Sequence record: MT028491.1
Strand: one strand, 5' to 3'
DNA length: 64,000 nucleotides
Shown here: piece by piece, positions 2,827 to 8,120 of the stretch
Position numbering within the stretch: position 1 is the first letter of the stretch
Layout: each line of letters starts with the position of its first letter
Translations under genes and position numbers: made by a program
Notes under the pieces: generated by a model
Databases searched by the model: none
What the model saw: only the letters and a program-made list of their open reading frames with translations
What the model was told of the DNA's origin: nothing

Positions 2827-5335
2827 CTAATGTTGCTTGTTCCTCTAGCGTCCAACGTCTGGTTTCCAGAAGTCTAGACAAAGGTTCTTCAAATACTTTT
2901 TGAAATTGAGTATCATAATCAATAAACCCATCTAACTGAAATTCTTTTGGAAGTTCTGTTAGACACGCCAAGTCTTTAAAACCTAGTGGGTTTGGGGTTT
3001 TCAATGCAACGATCTTAATTTTGTCGCCAGAATTAATAAGGTCGTATCGTTCCTTCAAATTGTGATGATTCAAGAGTTTGTTATACAGAGCGCTTGCTTT
3101 TGCATTTTGCGGTGCACCCTTAATTGGATTTCCCTTATGATCTGTATATTTTCCAAGATCGCTAATACCCTTGGAAATACCGATTTCATGGAAAGCCATA
3201 TTCTTGAATTCTTCACGTTTTTTATTGGTGAATTCCCAAATGTCCTTTTCCTGCCCTGTGATAATAATCTTCATCGCATCACCCATCCATTCACGCACCT
3301 TATGTGGTGTAGATGTCTGGACAACCTCAAGGCCGGTTACAGTAAGCTTTGGTTCGCTATAACGAACTTTTTCCGAATCCCAAACATAAAGGCCATAACG
3401 CTTTTTGGCAGTCTGAATCATCACTTCGCAAATCTTTTCTCTCTTGAAAGAAAGCTTGCGCTGGAATGAATTCAAATAGTCGGCAAGGTCTTCAAAACAC
3501 TTATCGAAAACAGGCTGTAGCTTTTCATCTGAGACACGATCTAGGAAGTTAACAATGTCTTCCTTTGTCGCATTTGGGCGCTTGGCTAGAAGGATATCAA
3601 CGAATTTCGAGCAATCAAGATAGATCGAGTCAGTGTCGCCATAAACAACATACTCTTGATCAAATGTACCTAATGTCTTATTGAGATATTCATTGATATA
3701 TTTCATAGCCGATAGAATCGTAAGCTGGCCTGAAATGGTAACAGCTTCGGCATTCTTAAGACTATAATAACGGAAATTAGGTTCTCCTAGAGCGCCGTAT
3801 AGAGCATTAATAGCAACCTTACGGGCATTCTGTGAGACGTTTTCAATGGCTTCTGTTAGTGACCATTTATCATATTCCGCCGTATCACCTTTGTTCTTGA
3901 AATCCTGTGCCAAACGAGCAGCATCAAGCATTTTGTTTTTATGCTCTTTACGCTTGTTGAAGAACAGTTCAATAACTTCTGGAATGATCCCTTTGAAATC
4001 TCTTGTGTAGAGAACACCATTAGCCGACATGCAAAGGTTTTCGTTTTGGAAACGTTTTCTCTCTGCAAAATCATCCTGATTGATAAGATGGTTTAGGGAT
4101 ACACCAGATACAAAACCACGCATGGTTTCTGGTGAAATGTTATAGTGCATAATAATCGAAGGATATAGACTTGTCAAGTCAAAAGATACAACCCAAGGAC
4201 TAAAATGAGGTTCAACCTCTTTTACATATGCACCTTCAAATTTAACTTTAGGATTAGATTGACGTGGTGGAATAACAATATTATTCTTCTTAAGATAATT
4301 GAAAAGAATAGCATCCCACATTCTAGTATTATGAAGAATATCTTCATAATTACACTTCGCGTCATAAGTCATAGAGATAATAAGATCGAATAATTTCTTC
4401 TTATCATCAAGATCAGCTAGTAGTTCAACGTCCTGTACGTTATACTCAATATGATTTTGCGGGTCTGTTCTATACAACAAATGGCCCGGAATACCGTTAT
4501 CTAGCTTAAGCTTGCCTTTTCCTAATTCATTTCTACAAACCCATTCAAGAGCATATGAAGCTTGTGGACTAAACCCCATTTTCTTATACAAGAATTGATA
4601 GTCGATATGGGTAACACCTAAAAGAGTATATTCCTTTACCAGCTTACCGTTTTCGTAATATTCTCTTTCTCTAATTTCTTTCCATGGAGAAAGGCGCTTG
4701 GCAAATGAATCATCCAAGACTTTACGAATTCTATTGATGATATAAGGCAAATCGAAACCAGCCGAATACCAACCAGTGATGATGTCAAAACCAGTTTCTT
4801 CCATGAAACGAACAAAGTCTGCCAACATTTCATGTTCATAATCATATTTCTTGAATACAGTCTTACGGTTGGGATCGGGAACATAATCATTGATAGCAAA
4901 AACATAATAAGTACGGTTCCATTCAACAGTGATAACATTAATCACTTCTGGTGTACCGTATGGATCGGGTCTTGATCCTTCTGTTACTTCTGTTTCAATG
5001 TCGAGGCGACCAATTCTAATCAGGGATCGATTGTATGCTACGGCTTCATCTGGAAACTCATCCGACAAAAAAGCGTAGGTGAAATTATCCATGCCATAGA
5101 TTTCAAACCCATCAACATCCTTATATTGGTTGATAAAGTTATTGGCGTCTTTCAAACCATCAAAATGATGTGGTTTGACGTTCTTTCCTTCAAGGGTTTT
5201 GTATCCTGTAGGATCATTAGAAAGCGTGAATAGAGTTGGTTCATAAGGAACCTTTCGATTGAAAGGCTCACCATTCTCATAACCACGCAAGAGGATATTG
5301 TTACCCCACTTTACAGCGTTGGTATAAAAATACAT
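2810..5335 (-). CDS. gp43: Family B DNA polymerase (T4 gp43-like)
   Basis: Exonuclease DIET and GFDLPY; SFDLTSLYPS, KVAINALYG, YGDTDS; C-terminal clamp-binding TLDDFF. Confidence 0.97.
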   Translation of the reverse strand: MYFYTNAVKWGNNILLRGYENGEPFNRKVPYEPTLFTLSNDPTGYKTLEGKNVKPHHFDGLKDANNFINQYKDVDGFEIYGMDNFTYAFLSDEFPDEAVAYNRSLIRIGRLDIETEVTEGSRPDPYGTPEVINVITVEWNRTYYVFAINDYVPDPNRKTVFKKYDYEHEMLADFVRFMEETGFDIITGWYSAGFDLPYIINRIRKVLDDSFAKRLSPWKEIREREYYENGKLVKEYTLLGVTHIDYQFLYKKMGFSPQASYALEWVCRNELGKGKLKLDNGIPGHLLYRTDPQNHIEYNVQDVELLADLDDKKKLFDLIISMTYDAKCNYEDILHNTRMWDAILFNYLKKNNIVIPPRQSNPKVKFEGAYVKEVEPHFSPWVVSFDLTSLYPSIIMHYNISPETMRGFVSGVSLNHLINQDDFAERKRFQNENLCMSANGVLYTRDFKGIIPEVIELFFNKRKEHKNKMLDAARLAQDFKNKGDTAEYDKWSLTEAIENVSQNARKVAINALYGALGEPNFRYYSLKNAEAVTISGQLTILSAMKYINEYLNKTLGTFDQEYVVYGDTDSIYLDCSKFVDILLAKRPNATKEDIVNFLDRVSDEKLQPVFDKCFEDLADYLNSFQRKLSFKREKICEVMIQTAKKRYGLYVWDSEKVRYSEPKLTVTGLEVVQTSTPHKVREWMGDAMKIIITGQEKDIWEFTNKKREEFKNMAFHEIGISKGISDLGKYTDHKGNPIKGAPQNAKASALYNKLLNHHNLKERYDLINSGDKIKIVALKTPNPLGFKDLACLTELPKEFQLDGFIDYDTQFQKVFEEPLSRLLETRRWTLEEQATLDDFFF

Positions 5336-5436
5336 TAAATTCCTATATAAAAATCAAAATAATTATCACATTGATTCCAAAGCGGAATCAAATGCATATT
5401 AAAATCGTATGCGTATTATATATCATAAACATAAGC

Positions 5437-5476
5437 AAAAAACAAGGGCAGAGTCGTTAAACCCTACCCCTTGTTT
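5437..5476 (-). terminator. Intrinsic terminator after the Gly/Asn-rich gene
   Basis: Minus strand AACAAGGGGTAGGGT-TTAACG-ACTCTGCCCTTGTT followed by a T tract. Confidence 0.6.
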
Positions 5477-5506
5477 TCATTTTTTAATGGTTTAGGCTGT
5501 TATGGA

Positions 5507-6454
5507 TTAGTGGCGACCGCCACCCTTTCCACCACCGGAATTGCCTTTGCCGCCACCGTTGCCGTTGCCATTTCCATGGCCATTTCCGTTACCGTTGCCA
5601 TTCCCATGACCATGGCCATTATTGCCGGAATTTCCGTTACCGTTGCCGTTACCATTATTGCCGGAATTTCCGTTACCGTTGCCGTTACCATTATTGGAAC
5701 CACCGTTGCCAGTGCCGGGACCATTGCCACCGGTATTACCACCGCCATTGCCGGGATTTCCGTTATTACCATTTCCATTGCCGGGTCCACCGGTATTACC
5801 GTTGCCGTTTCCATTACCGTTGTTTCCACCAGTATCACCGCCACCAGTGTTACCGCCTGTGTCTCCACCACCGGTATTTCCACCGTTGTCAGAACCACCG
5901 TTATCACCGCCACCGGAATTATCACCACCGCCAGTGTTTCCGCCGCCGTTATCCGATCCACCGGTATTATCACCACCGCCTGTGTCTCCACCACCGGTAT
6001 TTCCGCCGGTATTATCGCCACCGCCAGTGTTTCCGCCGTTGTCAGAACCACCAGTATTTCCACCTGTGTTTCCGCCAGAGCCGGAGTCAGTTCCACCAGT
6101 ATTGCCCGTATTCGATCCACCGGTATTTCCACCAGTTGAACCAGTACCGGAACCAGAGTCCGTGCCGCCCGTCGAACCAGAACCGGCGTTAGTACCACCA
6201 GTTGCACCACCGGAAGTGCCGGAATTTGCACCACTGGTATTTCCGCCAGTATTCGTACCGCCATTGGCACCACTGTTTCCCTTGCCGGAATCTGAATGAT
6301 CAGACCCACGACCGGACGAACCAGCATCACCGAAAAGCGTTCGCTTATAGACAATGGCATTACCCTTGTCGATATCGCTGGCGTCAAGTGCACCAGCATA
6401 GGCAGCGCCCGACATAAGAACAGCAACGGCCATAGACAGGTAAATACGCTTCAT
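5507..6454 (-). CDS. Secreted Gly/Asn-rich repeat protein with Sec signal peptide
   Basis: AAGGAG SD precedes ATG at 6454 (MKRIYLSMAVAVLMSGAAYA-GA: n/h/c regions, AxA site); then GGNT, GGGDN and GNGNGN repeats. Confidence 0.8.
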   Translation of the reverse strand: MKRIYLSMAVAVLMSGAAYAGALDASDIDKGNAIVYKRTLFGDAGSSGRGSDHSDSGKGNSGANGGTNTGGNTSGANSGTSGGATGGTNAGSGSTGGTDSGSGTGSTGGNTGGSNTGNTGGTDSGSGGNTGGNTGGSDNGGNTGGGDNTGGNTGGGDTGGGDNTGGSDNGGGNTGGGDNSGGGDNGGSDNGGNTGGGDTGGNTGGGDTGGNNGNGNGNGNTGGPGNGNGNNGNPGNGGGNTGGNGPGTGNGGSNNGNGNGNGNSGNNGNGNGNGNSGNNGHGHGNGNGNGNGHGNGNGNGGGKGNSGGGKGGGRH

Positions 6455-6581
6455 GTTTTTCTCCTTTTCACAATTGAACTCATAACAAATAAACATGTTC
6501 TAACGGGTGTTTTAGTCACCCTCACAACACCATATCTAACACTTAATTTTTGGATGTCAACAACAAAATAAAGAAAAAAAT

Positions 6582-6602
6582 AAAAAAGGGGCCGAAGCCC
6601 CT
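6582..6602 (-). terminator. cUUCGg intrinsic terminator after the hsp20-like gene
   Basis: Minus strand AGGGGC-TTCG-GCCCCT-TTTTT. Confidence 0.85.
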
Positions 6603-6608
6603 AAAATT

Positions 6609-7217
6609 TTACTTAATAGCTATTTTCTTTGGCTTTGGTTGAGCCGCAACAGACAGTGGTTTCGTCAATATACGAAGTTCGCCATTGATCAATTCTACGC
6701 TTTCAACATCGGATTGATATGTACACTCGAAATGTACCGTATTTGGTCTTTCAACTATACCACCAATCTTTTTAAAACCGGCTGGAATAGTTGATTCTTT
6801 CTTGGCATCCACGACAATATGAAAATTTCCATCGCTTTGCTTGGTACTGGTTACTTCAATCTGGTCTTTTGTGAAGCCAACAACTTCAACAATAACCATT
6901 GCGCTACCGGTTTCAGTGTTAAAGTAATAAAGAGCTTTGCGATTATTACCATTAATCATTTCATTATCAGTAATGCGTCTGGAACGAATTGGTTCCATAA
7001 TTTTCTTTTCCCATTGATTTTGATAATCAATGCCATCACGACCATCAAACAAAATATCGTCTGGATATGCGCTTGACTGACTTTCACCCGGAAGATCGAT
7101 TTTATCAACCAATTCACCAGAAGTTGGATCAATAAAATGAATGGACTTAACACCCATTCCACCAAGAACGTTTCCAATCTTATCAATCATAGCCTGTTCT
7201 TCTGTATTTTTAATCAT
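6609..7217 (-). CDS. Small heat-shock protein (Hsp20/alpha-crystallin-like), divergent
   Basis: VVGFTKDQIEV...VELINGELRI and C-terminal KKIAIK (IxI) motif; regA-hsp20-gp43 synteny of marine T4-like phages. Confidence 0.65.
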   Translation of the reverse strand: MIKNTEEQAMIDKIGNVLGGMGVKSIHFIDPTSGELVDKIDLPGESQSSAYPDDILFDGRDGIDYQNQWEKKIMEPIRSRRITDNEMINGNNRKALYYFNTETGSAMVIVEVVGFTKDQIEVTSTKQSDGNFHIVVDAKKESTIPAGFKKIGGIVERPNTVHFECTYQSDVESVELINGELRILTKPLSVAAQPKPKKIAIK

Positions 7218-7281
7218 TATAAGCCTTTCAATTCACTACAGTTTTTAAATTCATGTTAGGCGGTATATAAACCATTATCCT

Positions 7282-7314
7282 AAAAAGACAATAGGCGGAT
7301 CGAAACCCGCCTAT
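7282..7314 (-). terminator. Probable terminator after regA
   Basis: ATAGGCGG / CCGCCTAT 8-bp stem with T-rich tail on the minus strand. Confidence 0.55.
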
Positions 7315-7318
7315 AAAA

Positions 7319-7729
7319 TTATTCCGTTTCCGGCTTCTTTTTGCGTCCAACCTTATATTTGTGGATAAGTTCCCAATTTTCCCTATCAGAGAACTTGACA
7401 ATGACAATCTTATCCATCTTAGCCCTTGGTTCTTCAATAAGATTTTTATCGACAACCTCAATCAACCCCCACTGTTCAAGCAAGGAAATGATTGTATTGC
7501 GTCTGGCAATATCAGACTTGGCTAAGGTTGATTCACGCCCATCAAGCAAGAACAATTCCTTGAAATGGACGATGAAAAATTTACCCTTCTTATGAAGGAT
7601 ATGGCAGGACTGATATAGCTTCTTTTCTTTACTTGAAGCCACACCCATTCTTGTAAGAGTTTCTTTTACTTTTAAAAAATCATCTGGACTCTTTAAAGTA
7701 ATTTCAACAAAGTTGATTTCACTAGACAT
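7319..7729 (-). CDS. regA: Translational repressor RegA
   Basis: PDDFLKVKETLTRMGVAS...LYQSCHILHKKG..IVHFKELFLLDG; start moved to ATG 7729 behind an AAGGTGG SD. Confidence 0.95.
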   Translation of the reverse strand: MSSEINFVEITLKSPDDFLKVKETLTRMGVASSKEKKLYQSCHILHKKGKFFIVHFKELFLLDGRESTLAKSDIARRNTIISLLEQWGLIEVVDKNLIEEPRAKMDKIVIVKFSDRENWELIHKYKVGRKKKPETE

Positions 7730-8120
7730 CACGTCTACCACCTTTGAACAATACTTTTTCTAATTCTTCTTTTTGTTGTTCATTCAATAATCCTGCAATT
7801 TCACATGCTTTACGGTAGGATACATTGTAAACTTGCATGACGAGTTGAATTTCGTCGGACTCATGCTTCTTAAACCACTTGCCAAAACGATAACCCTTTG
7901 GCAGTGCGTAGTAATAAAAATCATAGTTCATTTCATCCGTCATATTTGGCATTTGATTAGCCATATTTGCGTATAAAATGGAGTCCTTGCAATTGGCGAA
8001 AGCCTTGTTAATTACAAACTGGTTGTAAAGCTTTCCTTCCATATCTGGCGAGAACATGTACTCTTTTTTGTTAATGCTCTTCACCAAATCAAAGATATTT
8101 ATCTCTTTTTCTTCACTCAT
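7722..8120 (-). CDS. gp62: Clamp loader small subunit
   Basis: YNQFVINKAF...YDFYYYALPKGYRFGKW; position between gp44 and regA. Confidence 0.9.
   Translation of the reverse strand: MSEEKEINIFDLVKSINKKEYMFSPDMEGKLYNQFVINKAFANCKDSILYANMANQMPNMTDEMNYDFYYYALPKGYRFGKWFKKHESDEIQLVMQVYNVSYRKACEIAGLLNEQQKEELEKVLFKGGRRDV

Follow-up and report, generated by a model that had tools for sequence, protein, structure and literature searches.

A Gly/Asn-rich protein of a jumbo T4-like Ochrobactrum phage carries a predicted Sec signal peptide and a peptide block found in exported proteins of Alphaproteobacteria

The phiOC_p005 locus

The window (the whole stretch of DNA analyzed, 64,000 nucleotides) is identical in sequence (100%) to Ochrobactrum phage vB_OspM_OC (MT028491.1), and window coordinates are those of the record. 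This phage is a lytic jumbo T4-like myovirus of the Kyanoviridae, with a genome of 227,654 bp. The gene considered here, phiOC_p005 (5507–6454, minus strand; hereafter p005), encodes 315 amino acids plus a stop codon, as judged from ORF translation, annotation, and the pattern of substitutions in a variant. The record annotates it as a hypothetical protein, and the genome paper of vB_OspM_OC does not mention it. Genes on the minus strand are arranged in the order gp45 (clamp), gp44 and gp62 (clamp loader), RegA, p006, p005, gp43 (DNA polymerase), UvsX, and gp41 (helicase), with RegA recognized by the Pfam model Translat_reg (E 5e-43). This order, running from gp45 to RegA, p006, p005, and gp43, bears out the placement of the gene within the replication module in a preliminary description of this DNA.

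The interval between regA and gp43 is also variable in cyanophage S-ShM2, where it is filled by a dozen small genes, suggesting that it is a site at which T4-like phages collect accessory genes. Searches with p005, p006, RegA, or DNA as the query detected no close relatives of the phage, p005 has no relative in two phage collections, and the closest DNA polymerase to gp43 of vB_OspM_OC is 40% identical. No further copy or paralogue of p005 was found elsewhere in the phage record.

Two observations concern the neighboring genes. The p006 gene (6609–7217, minus strand) encodes 202 amino acids, the C-terminal half of which faintly resembles small heat-shock proteins (PHROG 432, E 0.04; NCBIfam IbpA, E 0.028). 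The hsp20 gene of S-ShM2 occupies the regA–gp43 interval too, and a direct BLASTP comparison of its product with p006 was not significant. The regA frame (7319–7741, minus strand) has a possible GTG start at 7741, which would yield 140 amino acids, and an annotated start at 7729, which yields 136; both candidate starts overlap the 3' end of gp62.

The p005 gene lies in a cassette bounded by terminators. Upstream, the intrinsic terminator of p006 (6587–6602, minus strand; -11.7 kcal/mol) consists of a GC stem, a UUCG loop, and a T run, and should insulate p005 from read-through. A putative sigma-70-type promoter, read from the sequence, is located at 6533–6560 (minus strand). It has a perfect -35 element, TTGACA (6555–6560), a 16-nucleotide spacer with a terminal TG (extended -10), and the -10 element TAGATA (6533–6538). 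The latter is weak, and a consensus scan missed the site because this element ends in A. The T4-type late motif TATAAATA is absent upstream of p005. The 5' leader of about 70 nucleotides (6455–6532, minus strand) contains the Shine-Dalgarno sequence AAGGAG at 6461–6466; its predicted RNA fold is unremarkable (z -1.9), and it matches no Rfam family. The ATG of p005 (6452–6454) is 6 nucleotides 3' of AAGGAG, and an earlier in-frame ATG has no ribosome-binding site. The intrinsic terminator of p005 itself (5434–5471, minus strand; -20.9 kcal/mol, z -4.8) is formed by a hairpin at 5444–5471 and a T run. It starts 36 nucleotides past the stop codon, and none of 200 shuffled sequences was equally stable. 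The cUUCGg terminator, TTGACA-containing leader, and own terminator of the preliminary description were thus all recovered, each hairpin with its T run.

A further promoter-like site occurs at 5362–5391 (minus strand), past the p005 terminator and ahead of the gp43 start, and is composed of TTGATT, an 18-nucleotide spacer with TG, and GATAAT. Its position suggests that the DNA polymerase gene may be transcribed apart from the upstream replication genes.

The phiOC_p005 gene is truly protein-coding and evolves under purifying selection. A variant of it, ~97% identical, is present in contigs of two runs (X1 and X2) of a single ‘fungus metagenome’ study. The repeat tracts of the variant and the reference differ by indels of 15, 6, and 15 nucleotides, all in frame, so that repeat length drifts while the reading frame is kept; a comparison of repeat counts across isolates had been suggested earlier. 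Of the 30 coding-sequence substitutions listed, 24 are synonymous and 6 nonsynonymous in the minus-strand frame, with many falling at successive third positions. We weighed the possibility that p005 has no function as a protein, being instead a slippage-generated low-complexity ORF, a shadow of an opposite-strand gene, or a GGA-rich transcript with an RNA role. Long plus-strand ORFs do run across the repeats as well, phage relatives of the gene are lacking, and a faint CsrC-like Rfam match was obtained. The synonymous bias together with the in-frame indels excludes the plus-strand ORFs and a noncoding repeat. The Shine-Dalgarno sequence, signal peptide, and terminators are likewise all consistent with the minus strand, a block within the protein is conserved at the peptide level in the minus-strand frame (see below), and the CsrC-like score is far under the gathering score. 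The absence of a protein function is therefore extremely unlikely. The CsrC-like match itself (5429–5639, minus strand; 18 bits, where the gathering score is 61 bits) comes from GGA-rich coding sequence and was taken to be due to chance.

Among runs X1–X4 and X6/X8, several from a single ‘fungus metagenome’ study contain a strain ~97% identical to the phage over the region 5300–7300, and wastewater libraries contain exact 151-nucleotide pieces. These matches indicate that the phage or its close kin exists beyond the original sewage isolate. Two RNA-labeled runs have phage sequence; these are wastewater libraries with short contigs only, and probably represent DNA.

Architecture and composition of the p005 protein

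The first 20 amino acids of p005 (6395–6454, minus strand) form a predicted Sec signal peptide of the signal peptidase I type, recognized heuristically, by eye and by hydropathy. It has an MKR n-region, a 15-residue hydrophobic core, and A-Y-A at the predicted cut, with a hydropathy peak of 2.08 at residues 4–15. On direct reading, the segment has the features of a Sec/signal peptidase I substrate, with neither a lipobox cysteine nor a twin arginine. The preliminary description of a 315-amino acid ORF with a signal peptide was confirmed by the translation, by the AAGGAG-ATG start, and by these n-, h-, and c-regions.

T4-type phages have few exported proteins, and most of these are lysis or exclusion factors. 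The unstructured translocation domains of colicins, in turn, are Gly/Asn/Ser-rich. Both facts speak for p005 being a lysis or competition peptide, either one that regulates the timing of lysis from the periplasm or a Gly-rich chain resembling a bacteriocin or the disordered translocation domain of a colicin. We consider such a role very unlikely, as no lysis gene lies near p005 and the protein has no double-glycine leader, hydrophobic segment, or killing domain.

The signal peptide is followed by a unique charged segment of 38 amino acids (residues 21–58; 6281–6394, minus strand), for which sequence searches detected no relatives. Repeat analysis divides the next portion (5822–6280, minus strand) into degenerate Gly/Thr/Ser/Asn repeats (residues 59–125) and acidic Gly/Asp/Asn/Thr repeats (residues 126–211). 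The acidic repeats have a period of 4–5, and the length of the repeat zone differs among strains. Residues 212–300 constitute a region of alternating Gly and Asn (period 2) with four His. Its last part is a Gly-Asn dipeptide run containing the four His (residues 259–300), which together with a basic end (residues 301–315) spans 5510–5680 (minus strand); the last 15 residues contain K, K, and R.

The composition of the protein is extreme. The mature chain is 43.7% Gly, 20.7% Asn, 10% Thr, 9% Ser, and 6% Asp. The ~257 residues from position 59 on are 47% Gly and 23% Asn, and have a net charge of about -10. Among residues 59–315, four Ala account for all hydrophobic amino acids, and position 90 is the last of these. 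p005 contains a single N-x-S/T sequon, arguing against an array of N-glycosylation sites. The short unique segment, the more than 250 residues nearly free of hydrophobic amino acids, and the repeat zones with a basic tail are thus as first described. The zones stand, but the tract is not of uniformly low complexity, since it includes one sharply conserved block at residues 223–258.

The cassette had been noted to be GC-richer than its neighbors, and this holds (0.54–0.565 as compared to 0.33–0.42 around it). As a mark of recent foreign origin, the GC content fails. The same protein in the codon usage of the phage would have a GC content of 0.512, as compared to the observed 0.547, and GC3 is 0.415 as compared to 0.341 +/- 0.062 for phage genes, which is within 1.2 standard deviations. 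The bump in GC content is therefore due mainly to Gly codons. Codons for Gly, Asn, and Asp are broadly phage-like, with GGT preferred as in the phage, while the choice of Thr and Ser codons deviates, as judged from few codons. Recently transferred host DNA was rejected as an explanation, based on the phage-like preference for GGT, the GC3 value, and the saturation of third positions with respect to bacterial proteins that carry the conserved block.

No match to whole p005 was found in sequence searches of Pfam, NCBIfam, PHROGs, and the PDB, and a search of the ESM Atlas gave sub-threshold leads only. AlphaFold yielded a pLDDT of 34 for whole p005 (single sequence); with a 10-row family alignment, the C-terminal 101 residues reached 44. 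No confident structure or ordered bundle was present in these models, although low pLDDT may also reflect a lack of information available to AlphaFold. The lack of a predicted fold agrees with the disordered chain envisaged in the preliminary description.

The alternative that had been offered, a polyglycine-II structure as in gp38 and snow-flea antifreeze protein, did not survive. Polyglycine-II proteins have Gly at every third residue across several segments, each ~10 residues long. In p005, the autocorrelation of Gly at lag 3 is 0.66, which is below random, and Gly-x-x runs extend to no more than 4 triplets. This depletion of Gly at a spacing of 3 argues against polyglycine-II or collagen-like packing, and, along with the short Gly-x-x runs and the absence of an ordered bundle, led us to rule out polyglycine-II. 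RTX repeats were likewise ruled out, as the tract has zero matches to GG.G.D and no hydrophobic U position.

Gly spacing also bears on whether p005 is a virion component, such as part of a Gly-rich fiber, whisker, or adhesin akin in principle to polyglycine-II gp38 tips. Gly-rich motifs do occur in phage adhesins. In addition, vB_OspM_OC has an elaborate baseplate (PMC7139368). Besides Gly spacing that is not of period 3, a virion role is opposed by the cleavable Sec signal, by the location in the replication module with an early-type promoter and no TATAAATA late motif, by the lack of a PDB or PHROG match, and by the relatives of p005, which are bacterial exported proteins rather than phage proteins. 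We regard it as highly improbable.

A conserved block in exported alphaproteobacterial proteins

Word-based homology searches with p005 produced weak matches only (best E 2e-7), all of them on residues 223–258 (5681–5788, minus strand). This block, GPGNGNGN...GPGTGNGG, is common to exported alphaproteobacterial proteins and has 23 invariant positions. The invariant columns, which include two Pro, were defined in an alignment of ten proteins (A1), whose flanks are unalignable. p005 matches all 23 invariant positions, whereas shuffled tracts match at most 18 and the best segment elsewhere in p005 matches 17. The probability of a chance match to the 23 positions, given the composition of the tract itself, is 7e-14 per position. 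There is one copy of the block in the phage genome.

Between the phage and bacterial carriers, the block has 86–92% amino acid identity. At the nucleotide level, codon positions 1 and 2 are 90–94% identical and position 3 is 22–53% identical, as determined for three bacterial carriers. The combination of conserved amino acids and near-random third positions indicates that it is the peptide, and not a DNA element, that is conserved, and that transfer was not recent.

We retrieved ~45 bacterial proteins carrying the block, and those with organism names are all alphaproteobacterial. The named carriers are from three Ruegeria species, Limibacillus metagenome-assembled genomes (MAGs), a Rhodospirillaceae MAG, and a Hyphomicrobiaceae MAG, the last belonging to the order of Ochrobactrum. 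The carriers are of several types. Some have a signal peptide and a FecR domain (PF04773), others are Flp pilins extended at the C-terminus, and the remainder are small secreted proteins of 120–250 amino acids, a 420-amino acid family with a signal peptide, and ~510-amino acid proteins with two or three internal copies. The assignment of the Flp pilin carrier is based on Pfam Flp_Fap (E 3e-7), and one such protein is named Flp pilin by its JGI source. Annotations describe block proteins as hypothetical or by the N-terminal domain only.

Most full-length carriers begin with a signal peptide or a Flp prepilin leader. In most, 7–34 residues follow the core match, usually with K or R at the end; in the phage protein, 65 residues follow. 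p005 likewise combines an export signal and a basic end with a block near the C-terminus, the block ending 57 residues before it. Two carriers on long contigs lie among ordinary chromosomal genes, and no neighbor genes common to the carrier loci were seen. Neither Pfam nor NCBIfam has a model covering the block, whether in p005 or in ten bacterial carriers, and a literature search with two block motif strings found no relevant paper. The block is apparently undescribed.

Several carriers merit comment. In the metagenomic Flp-type pilins P0016 and P0023–P0026, the block forms a C-terminal extension and frequently has Cys on its flanks. Such pilins, if assembled into a pilus, would show the block along the pilus surface. 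The ~510-amino acid proteins P0028, P0032, and P0113, from Limibacillus MAGs and relatives, have acidic Pro-rich linkers between block copies and no recognizable signal peptide. Internal copies in proteins of this kind imply that the block is not strictly a C-terminal tag.

In a large representative profile search, 177 profile positions came from the sole full-length Flp pilin in alignment A2, and the matches were consequently mostly pilin relatives, with five block-only matches. Block peptide patterns in more than 600 genome and 254 viral stretches gave no match confirmed by tblastn, a result to be read in light of the BLAST filters, which reject the block. A scan with the FecR profile confirmed one block locus. 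The class-level search with A1 yielded FecR domains for the most part, and among the loci fetched only G001's own has the block. A 51-amino acid block query (single-sequence HMMER) missed one genome known to hold a carrier, where the DNA match was marginal.

The strict conservation of the block on unrelated carriers suggests that it is a recognized element and not a spacer. The main rival to this reading is that p005 acts in the periplasm or at the surface through its bulk properties, by forming a hydrated, acidic gel of Gly/Asn chains, by binding cations, or by assembling into a silk- or amyloid-like Asn ladder, the block serving only as a nucleation or turn element. Consistent with such a polymer are the 257 residues nearly lacking hydrophobic amino acids and carrying a net charge of about -10, the period-2 alternation of Gly and Asn toward the C-terminus, the drift in repeat number among strains, and the absence of a predicted fold. 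Bulk properties alone would hardly account for the retention of an exact block on unrelated architectures despite saturated synonymous sites, and the RTX-type calcium motif is absent. We judge the rival to be unlikely.

Proposed role and relation to known systems

Our favored interpretation, to which we give about an even chance, is that p005 is an early, exported, disordered accessory protein bearing a host-type envelope tag, encoded by a functional single-gene cassette in this lytic jumbo phage. Transcription would proceed from a host sigma-70-type promoter belonging to the gene, and so would probably be early, and would stop at the p005 terminator. Based on its signal peptide, the product would pass through the Sec system and be cut after residue 20. 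The mature protein of ~295 amino acids, acidic, Gly/Asn-rich, and predicted to have no stable fold, would then reside in the periplasm or beyond. A block of ~36 amino acids, a Gly/Asn run, and a basic end are the arrangement that Alphaproteobacteria place C-terminally on exported proteins of unrelated types, and the block may be a recognition or association element for some envelope component or for itself.

In these terms, p005 would consist of a spacer and a tag with no cargo domain, and what the phage delivers to the envelope is probably a cargo-free tag of host type. The lack of a cargo domain points to a competitor or a coat at the site of the block. p005 may occupy or coat the site used by host surface proteins that bear the block, which would remodel the infected cell's envelope; the phage might benefit by excluding other phages or by remodeling pili or adhesins. 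A more tentative proposal, which we consider unlikely, is that Alphaproteobacteria use the block on pilins, FecR-domain proteins, and secreted proteins as a hitherto undescribed module for extracytoplasmic targeting or association, and that the phage has captured it as a tag-only decoy. This decoy would compete with, or co-assemble onto, the host surface proteins that bear the block, for example shutting down pili or adhesins or excluding other phages.

The preliminary description had proposed that a lytic phage exports a polymer to the host envelope. The Sec-type signal peptide, the insulated cassette, and the absence of a predicted fold all favor this proposal, and its polyglycine-II component has fallen away. 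The functions suggested for the polymer, namely superinfection exclusion, receptor masking, and envelope stabilization, are speculative.

Lytic phages send few proteins to the host envelope, and most of the genes encoding these are orphans without an experimental handle. The p005 orphan has such a handle, namely a block that is under strong purifying selection and common to unrelated exported proteins of the host's class. The block raises two questions: what role and partner it has in Alphaproteobacteria, and whether the phage exploits the same interaction. If the block is a signal for sorting, anchoring, or self-association, it would be new to the envelope biology of a group to which Brucella, rhizobia, and roseobacters belong, and p005 would be a natural competitor with which to study it.

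Among known systems, polyglycine-II proteins (the T-even/S16 gp38 tip and snow-flea antifreeze protein) share with p005 a very high Gly content and the lack of a hydrophobic core. They are not Sec-exported phage early proteins, however, and p005 has no match to solved structures. RTX beta-roll repeats are, like p005, secreted and composed of Gly/Asp/Asn-rich tandem repeats, but are built from GGxGxDxUx nonapeptides with a hydrophobic U, none of which is found in p005. Colicin translocation domains resemble p005 as proposed here in being disordered and Gly/Asn/Ser-rich and in having short embedded recognition epitopes that act in the envelope. In contrast to p005, colicins have no signal peptide, enter from outside, and use Tol/Ton boxes, and no homology was found.

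Imm, Sp, and RI are T4-type exported or envelope accessory proteins. Along with moron cassettes, they offer parallels to p005 in having a dispensable-looking, envelope-directed product and a promoter-gene-terminator unit in a variable gap. Imm, Sp, and RI are small membrane or globular proteins, whereas p005 has no sequence or architectural similarity to them.

The closest resemblance is to the alphaproteobacterial block proteins, such as that of Ruegeria atlantica (WP_217354781.1), the FecR-domain proteins of the Hyphomicrobiaceae and Rhodospirillaceae MAGs, and the extended Flp pilins. As in p005, a signal peptide and a Gly-rich linker precede the block with its 23 invariant positions, and another Gly/Asn run follows it, with K or R at the end. 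The N-termini show no similarity: the bacterial proteins have a globular or pilin N-terminal part, whereas p005 has only its 38-amino acid unique segment along with a much longer repeat spacer. p005 thus belongs to a familiar kind of phage accessory gene, an orphan in a plastic region whose product is exported and directed to the envelope, and is distinctive in its extreme composition and in its sharply conserved, apparently undescribed peptide module of the host's class.
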